A stretch of DNA of 64,000 bases from contig OZ038378.1 in the NCBI GenBank assembly GCA_964036045.1, positions 195,734,001-195,798,000 of the forward strand, read 5' to 3'. The translations under genes were made by a program, and so were the position numbers. Under the pieces are notes generated by a model. The model saw only the letters and a program-made list of their open reading frames with translations. It did no database searches and was not told where the DNA came from. This document shows, piece after piece, positions 14,701 through 17,700 of the stretch (its first letter is position 1; the number at the start of each line of letters is the position of its first letter). Source of the stretch: Eutreptiella sp. 'Long Island Sound 2002'. Taxonomy: Eukaryota; Protista; Euglenida.

Positions 14701-17700
14701 GGGATCCCGCGGTCCCATGAGTCTTCCAAATCCTCCAGCGTCAGCCTGCGGTTCTGCTGGTTCGCCTCCTGCCGCTTGAGGGCGTACTCGGCCCACACAC
14801 GCTGGGAGTCGATGAACTCGGCCTCCCACGGCTGGATGTACCGGTACAGATTGGGGATCAGCTGGTCCTCGTCATGGCTCATACCCGCGCGGAAGAACTC
14901 CACCCCCATTTCGGTCTGCTTGGAGTACTTCAGATCCGACTGCGGGATCAGCACATGGCCCATGGACAGCATTCCCAGCCCGCCAAGCTCCTTCGGGGTG
15001 TAGAACACCACCTGCGGCATGGCAGATGAGAGCGGGATTGCATCGCCACGGCAGGTGGAGAAAGGGCCGCACACAGAGAGGCCGCAGTATGGCGCATAGA
15101 GAGGCAGCAGTATGGCACGTAGAGAGGCAGCAGTATGGCACGTAGAGAGGCAGCAGTATGGCACGTAGAGAGCAGGACCGCCGCATAGAGCAGAGAAGTG
15201 GGCTGCGGCAGGGTACATACCGGGGGGAAGCGCGAGGGCATCTTGGAATTCAAGCCGATCTTGATTCGCGTTTGGATCTTGTTCTCACATTTGACCAGCA
15301 GGTCCAGCAGCTCCTGCGTGTGGACCGTGGCCTCCCGGTAATACGTCATCAGCCCGATCAACACGGTGTTCCACTTGTTGACAATCTTCGTGAAAGTCGT
15401 CGCGCCGGAGGACATAAGCACCTGCCGAACCCGGTTCTCAAAGCGCTTCAGCGAGTCGTCGTCGACGCGCAGGAAGGCCTGCGCGGTGCGCTCCTTCGAG
15501 TTCTCGTTCTGGAGGTTCCACACGCCGTCCTTGGCCACGAACTCCTCGTTGAAGCTGCGGATCTTGGGCAGGATGCGCACCTGGAGGGAAAACATTTGAT
15601 GGAGCATCGATCTTGGGCTCGGAGACGCTTGGTCCTGCCTGTGTATCCTTCGGGGGGGGGGGCTAAACTGGTCCACCGGGATTTTGGCGGTAGTACATTG
15701 GCTGTTGTTGATAGGCCCACGTCGCGCGTGGGTGATCCCCCTGTGTGACATATAGTCCATGAGAAAGGCGCCCGCACCGCGCGCACCGCGCAGGCGTTTC
15801 TAGCAACCCTCTTCTGCATTTTTCAAGTTTTTTTCAGGGTGGCAAGGACGCGGTGGCCCAAGGGGTACGCATACAACAACGGAGGCCTCCACTCCAGCCT
15901 CCTCACCAAAGGTGGTTGTAGCTGCCCACACCCCCTGCCAGGGGAGGGCCGTAGGAAGAGGAAGAAGAAGATGTAGAACTCTCCGGTATGGCTGCTTGAC
16001 CGAAGAGCCTAGTGCCCCACAGGGTGCCCAAGCCTGTGGAGCCGTTTCGAACGTTTCACGTTTCGACATGTTGCTCAATGGGGTGCCCATTCCCATGATG
16101 CAACCGTTTCGGTGTGCTCGTATCGGTTCGTTTCGCGTTTCGATTGTCACAGCGTCGGCTACGAGGAAGCCTCCTCTTCCTCTTCATCGGCGGACGTAAG
16201 TGACGAGCCTGAGGATGATGAATCCGAATCAGAATCTGAACCACGACGTCTCGTGGCCGGTGGCTGCCCGTAAAAGCCACTTGGGAAGTGGTCCCAGGGG
16301 CCGTAGGGCTCGTATCGCACATTGCGCACATAGTGGTGAGGTGCAGAAAACAGCACAAGGGGAAGGAAAAAGTTGTCCGTGCACGTCGAAAACGCCCGCA
16401 CCGCGTGGTGCACTGCGCGCACCGCGCGGGCGCCTTTCTCCATCTGTGGTTTCTTTACGGGGCTCTAGACATTCACCCGTTTATTCTTCACCGCATGATG
16501 CAGTGTCGATCTTCTCCTGAAGGTCCGCCAAGCCGCTGCCTTGACCCCACCGTTTCTGTTTCTCCATGGCGGCGCGTTGTGGTGGTCCAGACATTAAGGT
16601 TCCATACGGCATTAACCTTCGCTCAGCCCCCCGACCGTGGTGTGGCATCCTTGCTGCAGGCCCCCAGTGGCGGTCGCGGCAATCACCCCCGCCGGTTCGC
16701 TCGAGCGAAATCTGGCACTCATCACCAGGGTCTGCTCAGCCCTCTCACCCCACCCACCACAGAAAATCTTTCCTCAGAAAAAAATTCAAACGGCCCCGAA
16801 CTTGGAGGTCCATGTACACACACTTTTTTTGGCCTCTGACCCCCGCCCCTCCGGTGTAGTATCAACCAGCCACTGAGCAATGGTCTGGCATCCCTAACGG
16901 GTGCTTTGGCTGGGTGTCCCCCGTGCCGACAGGCTAGAGGGTCCTTTGCTGACTCTGATTATGTTTGTTCAGAGGTAGCCTGGCCGTGGCCATTCCTGCT
17001 GTGCTGAGCCCTGTACGAGGGCCGCATGCTGTGCACCATCGTGCCGTGCTGTGGGGGCAGTGTGCAACGGATTGGGAAGGGGGACCCCCGTCCAGATGCG
17101 CACCTCAAACCCGGACATGGCGAACAGCAGGTTGGGGTTGTCCTTGGAGTACACCGAGACGAAGGATTCCTCCCACTGGACCGTGGTCACGGAGCGCGGC
17201 AGGCGGTTCTTGATGTCCCAGAACACCGCCCGGCCCAGGTTGACGTCGTGCTTCATAAGCCGCATCCGCTGGTCGCGGGGCCAGCACTTCTTGTTGTTGT
17301 ACCCGACGACGTTCTCATTGTTGGGGTCGGGGTGTTCGGTCAGGAAGCGGTGGATGAGGTCCTTGCTCTCCTCGTGCGTGAACTTCAGCATCATGTGGAT
17401 GCGGTCGATGTACCTGTCACACCGGCGGCACACCGACAGGCACAATGCCCCTGCACACGGCCATTCGGCGGTCCCCCTCATGCAACACAGAGGCACCACA
17501 GAATAGGACACACACGCCAGCAAATGATGTTGCGAAGAGTGGCAGTCACTCGGGCCAGCCTCAGGCTTTGGCGGCAGAAATGCGCTCGACCGACGGCGGT
17601 TGGGGATCGACCGACGGCGTTTGATTGCCAGCCGAAGCCGATTGGCCAATTACGGACTGCTCCTGAGCGGCCGATGCACCCGGTGACGTTGTGCCCGGTC

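Follow-up and report, generated by a model that had tools for sequence, protein, structure and literature searches.

An 11-nt direct repeat across the junctions of PRP8 intron 5 in Eutreptiella: a probable footprint, possibly of an insertion that duplicated its AG|GT target

The fifth intron of PRP8 in Eutreptiella sp. 'Long Island Sound 2002' is flanked by a direct repeat, and the question raised by this locus is whether that repeat records how the intron arose. The initial annotation of the window (the whole 64-kb stretch of DNA that was analysed, to which all coordinates refer unless a locus is named) had proposed a recent transposon insertion, possibly from an undescribed introner family, in which an 8-bp target duplication supplied the donor GT and a terminal inverted repeat (TIR) supplied the acceptor AG. 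PRP8 was found complete on the minus strand (4402..24356), with 13 coding exons, 12 GT-AG introns and a coding length of 7215 nt, divisible by 3; the intron in question is the fifth of the 12, and its annotated coordinates and letters were confirmed. Exon 5 (17104..17413, minus) ends in the residues GFE, corresponding to human PRP8 residue 1193, and is followed by intron 5 (15581..17103, minus; 1523 nt, phase 0) and by exon 6 (15221..15580, minus), which begins VRILPK at human residue 1194, with no residue gained or lost across the boundary. A metatranscriptome contig of 1227 nt, showing 0 differences, lacked exactly the 1523 nt of intron 5 and likewise skipped introns 4 and 6, which bears out the claim that splicing restores the reading frame exactly. 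With GT..AG ends, a pyrimidine tract (pyrimidine fraction 0.71) and removal from mRNA, intron 5 has the properties of a U2-type intron; it is a conventional spliceosomal GT-AG intron whose splicing leaves the protein unchanged.

Database searches were run for each PRP8 exon separately, and short two-exon junction peptides were compared with protein P0008. Among named sequences, the last exon was closest to one from the euglenid Ploeotia vitrea (84%), and the sequencing runs containing the PRP8 region include estuary metatranscriptomes. The gene also has a 33-nt micro-exon (exon 2; 22029-22061) and an extended Pro/Gly/Met-rich region of ~90 aa at its N-terminus. Elsewhere in the window, the plus-strand segments 33201-33332, 36919-37125, 39483-39545 and 60753-60854 showed coding-like codon usage and charged coiled-coil-like translations, and it is possible from these properties that they are exons of one or more genes.

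The direct repeat is 11 nt long. Its donor copy (17095..17105, minus) consists of 2 exon and 9 intron nucleotides and its acceptor copy (15572..15582, minus) of 2 intron and 9 exon nucleotides; the 8-bp repeat described previously lies within this junction identity and was confirmed to the letter, and past 9 nt the identity falls off abruptly. The AG that precedes the donor belongs to the repeat, such that both splice dinucleotides are contained in the duplication and no TIR is needed as the source of the AG, contrary to what had been proposed. A direct repeat with AG and GT across both junctions has the form expected of a duplicated AGGT target, and the 11-nt identity likewise provides the locus-specific target-site duplication that is looked for in introners.

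Part of the identity can be attributed to splice consensus, since donors in E. gracilis follow the consensus GTGTG and acceptors comprise a C-rich tract and CAG (PMC11170887), and since the exonic part of the acceptor copy is a GC-rich encoding of Glu-Val-Arg-Ile that recurs unchanged in 6 intron-less PRP8 loci from other organisms. The statistics of the junctions rest on the 12 introns of one gene, with intron 5 itself chosen for its repeat: against a leave-one-out matrix of the local splice consensus, the repeat had P ~1.8e-4, with 0.002 such cases expected among the 12 introns and 2 observed; permutation of introns among junctions gave an own-junction excess across PRP8 of p=2e-4 (p=0.0025 without intron 5); and junction repeats of at least 11 nt were carried by 2/12 introns here vs 1/149 PRP8 introns of other lineages (Fisher p=0.015, or 0.13 without the selected intron). 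Subject to the caveat that the intron was selected for it, the repeat can be read as a probable footprint instead of luck alone.

The neighbouring intron 4 (17414..17924, minus; 511 nt) also has an 11-nt junction repeat (17918-17928 / 17407-17417), which includes AG and GT as that of intron 5 does, and has no inverted repeat. To the left, the intron 4 repeat is continued by a degenerate extension (11/15 nt).

At intron 5, a weak inverted repeat was found, formed by a 5' arm (17087..17095, minus; CTGGA, bulge, GGG) and a 3' arm (15581..15588, minus) that overlaps the C-rich pyrimidine tract and CAG acceptor. It comprises 5 perfect pairs, a bulge and 3 more, with p=0.011 given the repeat and a real acceptor; the terminal duplex energy was ordinary (z -0.65), and two unrelated PRP8 acceptors scored 5 against the same 5' end, compared with 6 for the intron's own. 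A search of the window for 8-bp repeats combined with 5-nt inverted runs returned 17 matches, including 3 real MITEs, whereas shuffled sequence returned 3-13, which places such a combination at noise level. The short inverted repeats annotated at the ends of the body are thus present as CTGGA/GGG pairing, but they are weak and coincide in part with the acceptor tract.

hAT transposons and their MITEs have an 8-bp target-site duplication and a TIR starting with CAG or TAG. Three hAT-like MITEs in the window (29726-29991, 37736-38073 and 43605-43955), with 8-bp duplications, CAG..CTG ends and TIRs of ~10-14 nt, fit this pattern. Intron 5 resembles them in that an 8-bp duplication is one possible register of its repeat; however, its inverted repeat starts with CTG and measures only 5+3 nt. 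Its ends read CTG..CAG in both orientations, a polarity opposite to that of the local MITEs, and on this ground neither its candidacy as a hAT element nor the annotated hAT type was supported.

The 1515-bp body had been described as one element; it is in fact a patchwork of later high-copy insertions over a low-copy remnant of ~250 nt. The remnant consists of a 3' terminal part (15581..15712, minus), over whose junction the contig is unbroken at about single-copy depth, and a 5' terminal part (16980..17103, minus; inner limit approximate). Between them lie host repeat B (15713..16747), which differs by ~10-13% from the contigs of its family; a non-coding, high-copy TIR element of 680 bp that splits it (15761..16440), with ends GAGAAAGGCGCCCGC (GAGAAAGG) and the 3-bp duplication CAT; and a further high-copy stretch (16748..16979; limits approximate) with a depth of 3000-5000 vs ~30. 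The 680-bp element may be PIF/Harbinger-like, and empty-site joints for it occur in other copies of its host repeat. Distant relatives of host repeat B were located in the window at ~31.4k, 32.5k and 36.3k, and in three runs the family contigs pass from 16747 directly to 15713 again, which suggests that this repeat is tandem or terminally repeated. The divergence of the nested repeats indicates that intron 5 is not recent, in disagreement with the recent insertion envisaged originally.

In a genomic run with a single-copy depth near 30, the interior (15772-16977) reached depths of ~2,700-106,000, and both junctions were crossed by unbroken contigs at depths of 34 and 18. The excess depth at the ends corresponds to at most ~3 extra copies of the 3' end and ~12 of the 5' end, an estimate that covers copies of at least 85% identity and would miss those below; the excess at the 5' end probably spills over from the neighbouring repeat. 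Searches of the window, the other 11 PRP8 introns, 94 fetched loci and viral contigs turned up no copy of either end, and Rfam and tRNA scans gave no match. In the genomic data, the termini are near single-copy.

An introner family comprises, by definition, at least 4 introns whose ends are similar, and its consensus TIRs, where present, measure at least 6 nt (Gozashti et al., bioRxiv 10.1101/2022.06.06.494994; review PMC11282704). Within the sequence searched, no set of four or more introns or elements shared both the 5' and the 3' ends of intron 5, and its inverted repeat amounts to 5 nt, a bulge and 3 nt. The likeness to introners lies in a precise GT-AG intron with a duplicated junction, and the geometry in which the donor comes from the target-site duplication and the acceptor from the element has been described, for example in Symbiodinium with a 4-bp duplication; intron 5 differs in its low-copy ends, its marginal TIR and a position common to distant taxa. 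The PRP8 locus of a non-green protist (L094:8431-12465; JGI 3300071645) served as a positive control: ~7/11 of its mapped introns share ends and carry inverted repeats of 11-17 nt, a pattern by which they qualify as a genuine introner-like family. Another two introns of this locus pair with each other (blast E down to 1e-17), and one intron has a 13-nt junction identity. The L094 intron at the intron 5 position falls outside the introner-like family. With termini present in at most a few copies in ~30x genomic data and unmatched elsewhere in the sequence searched, the proposal of an undescribed introner family was not sustained.

Eight distinct loci (L001, L002-4, L005-6, L007, L008, L092, L093 and L094) have an intron of the same phase between the same two codons, so that the position lacks the lineage specificity of an introner, and 57/110 informative fragments of homologues read through after GFE, among them a Pleurochrysis entry for which only the protein is known. 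Best structure hits place L001 and L002 with green algae. L007 and L094, whose best structure hits favour human over Chlamydomonas PRP8 (by a narrow margin for L094), grouped apart from the large green-algal group in a weak quick tree of 103 columns; the tree served solely to show that homologues with the intron occur in more than one group. By these assignments, the intron 5 position is occupied not only in green algae but also in one or more further lineages. Conservation of the position in distant eukaryotes had been named in the initial annotation as refuting its own reading; the eight loci show such conservation, a result softened by the possibility that the shared position reflects parallel gain at AG|GT. 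In a green alga (L005:4930-5162 and L006:3464-3696), the end of the exon together with the donor is duplicated in tandem over 140 nt at this position, which yields two possible donors.

A metagenome scan of 80 PRP8 loci, a set biased to transcripts and intron-poor taxa, contained none close to the window (<=84% nt identity), and the site was intron-free wherever the junction was read. The comparison loci include no genomic PRP8 from another euglenid, and contigs of a few vertebrate-PRP8-like fragments were left out. L089 and L090 derive from one 1.35-Mb ENA contig; L089 was 99.99% identical to the window where compared, and neither is independent of it. No empty allele was seen: contigs from two DNA-bearing runs cross the junctions with intron 5 present, and Logan contigs reveal the presence, not the absence, of alleles.

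Sharing of positions was also considered across the gene. The 7215 coding nt of PRP8 yielded only 14 mapped AGGT sites inside exons, a number that may lie below compositional expectation and may reflect avoidance of cryptic donors. The intron 4 position is common to L091 (7918-8065), a locus using the ciliate code, and the intron 12 position to L019; counted as sites, 3/5 intron-bearing AG|GT sites (introns 4, 5 and 12) vs 2/14 empty ones are shared with other eukaryotes (p=0.08), which leans towards age of the introns. PRP8 offers ~19 AG|GT sites to any mechanism that requires them, and position sharing does not prove ancestry, because gain under such a requirement would be restricted to these sites and parallel gain is common among the new introns of Daphnia (PMC4202315).

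Insertion with target duplication is the most likely class of explanation for intron 5. In its specific form, to which we assign a probability of about 45%, intron 5 would be an insertion that duplicated its AG|GT target, with both splice sites drawn from the duplication and its position gained in parallel at a proto-splice hotspot. The exon sequence AG|GTGCGCATC would have been cut with a stagger and have received a stretch of DNA, by AGGT-target insertion or double-strand-break repair, with ~11 nt of target duplicated; the first copy would have provided the donor GT and the second the acceptor AG, so that splicing restores the reading frame exactly. What was inserted can no longer be recognised, a low-copy remnant of ~250 nt having since been inflated to 1.5 kb by at least 3 high-copy repeats. 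The site is a codon-fixed proto-splice site (Glu|Val-Arg), the shared position would reflect parallel gain or re-gain, and intron 4 would have had the same history.

The duplication reading is supported by a repeat beyond chance, by the gene-wide excess that persists without intron 5, by the TIR-free 11-nt repeat at intron 4 and by the low-copy termini. There are precedents for intron gain by AGGT-target insertion and NHEJ (PMC3443670); new introns in Daphnia have junction repeats of 4-12 bp and are 48% parallel gains (PMC4202315), and a newly gained intron of E. agilis has an 8-nt junction repeat (PMC4770533). Intron 5 resembles the cases of AGGT-target insertion or double-strand-break repair (PMC3443670), including those of Daphnia (PMC4202315), in its short repeat with AG and GT, its unique insert, its unchanged reading frame and the prospect of parallel gains; those cases rest on presence/absence alleles, whereas none was seen for intron 5, whose insert is old and overlaid by repeats. 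Counting against gain by duplication are the positions of introns 4, 5 and 12, which are common to other eukaryotes. Further counter-evidence comes from the conventional introns of euglenid tubulin genes, reported to be conserved and only lost (PMC3935182), and from Drosophila, where repeats of at least 5 bp are equally frequent around conserved and gained introns (PMC3443670).

The same shared positions, with the read-through in over half of the informative fragments, would suit an old intron inherited at a conserved AG|GT site, whose repeat arose by coincidence as a near-consensus donor (GTGCG) met Val-Arg-Ile codons, the extreme case having been picked among thousands of introns. The Euglena splice consensus and the exonic copy found unchanged in six other PRP8 loci agree with this account, as does the observation that 84.4% of E. 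agilis introns, conventional ones included, carry junction repeats (PMC12501133). A neutral 11-nt match cannot persist from early eukaryotes, so that in an ancient intron the repeat must be either chance or secondary. We regard coincidence as unlikely, given that it needs a second independent event of ~1e-3 at the neighbouring intron 4 and leaves the permutation excess without intron 5 to be explained. The secondary route, in which spliced mRNA or cDNA served as the template for repair of a break near the splice site and some exon bases were thereby carried into the end of the intron, a change tolerated only at AG|GT junctions, would account together for the shared positions and the long repeats of introns 4 and 5, and the degenerate left extension at intron 4 is consistent with it; nevertheless, no precedent was found, the one-sided long repeats that it predicts were absent from the 12 introns, and we judge it improbable.

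An element origin would place at this site a decayed TIR element with CTG..CAG ends, which made an 8-bp duplication on a target starting with GT, took the AG from its own end and the GT from the duplication, and belonged to a family that has since diverged or died. The inverted repeat is indeed in exact register with the 8-bp duplication; furthermore, the Euglena nonconventional motif N3-CDG..CH'G-N5/6 is present, at slide +5 only, as CTG/CAG, where the intron reads N3-CTG..CAG-N5 with further pairing, an arrangement for which nonconventional splicing in Euglena has been demonstrated. Slidable, nonconventional and hybrid introns of Euglena (PMC12501133, PMC3935182, PMC4770533) share with it the junction repeat and, at slide +5, CTG at +4 and CAG at about -6 to -8. 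Intron 5 differs from the nonconventional class in having a normal donor, a pyrimidine tract and CAG, and in a slid exon that starts with C where a purine is expected as the first downstream base. The nonconventional code failed in all 12 registers, and intron 5 was rejected as a nonconventional intron. In both cassettes tested, nonconventional splicing was lost when the exon began with C (PMC12501133), from which it follows that intron 5 is spliceosomal today; this blocks the nonconventional route. The element origin must, however, contend with ends that have no copies, with a TIR of 5+3 nt compared with 10-14 nt in the local hAT-like MITEs (of opposite polarity) and 11-17 nt in the L094 introner-like family, and with a combination of repeat and inverted run that is at noise level in the window; it also leaves 3/11 identical nt unexplained and an intron 4 that has no TIR, and we consider it rather unlikely, a little below simple coincidence. 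Creation of the intron by tandem duplication of an AGGT-containing exon segment is a known mechanism (PMC3443670), and a weak likeness of 30 nt exists between the 3' end of intron 5 and the start of exon 6; even so, alignments of the intron end to the exons were not significant (p 0.26-0.79) and the identity stops abruptly after 9 nt, by which a tandem origin is largely refuted and, in our estimation, very improbable.

As a single case, intron 5 carries little weight, as junction repeats in Euglena are already known and AGGT duplication is an old model; nor does its location in PRP8 have a shown functional meaning, because the protein is unchanged. Introns 4 and 5 may, more tentatively, exemplify a genome-wide process that leaves AG|GT-centred repeats of 7-15 nt at conventional introns, either through large-scale gain by target duplications of variable length, in which CTG..CAG elements linking nonconventional with spliceosomal introns may have a part, or through mRNA-templated remodelling of old ends. 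If long repeats prove to be in genome-wide excess, one genome could be used to test directly how spliceosomal introns are gained and how many 'conserved' positions reflect parallel gain. A measurable footprint of gain would matter because conventional euglenid introns are regarded as ancient and subject to loss alone.
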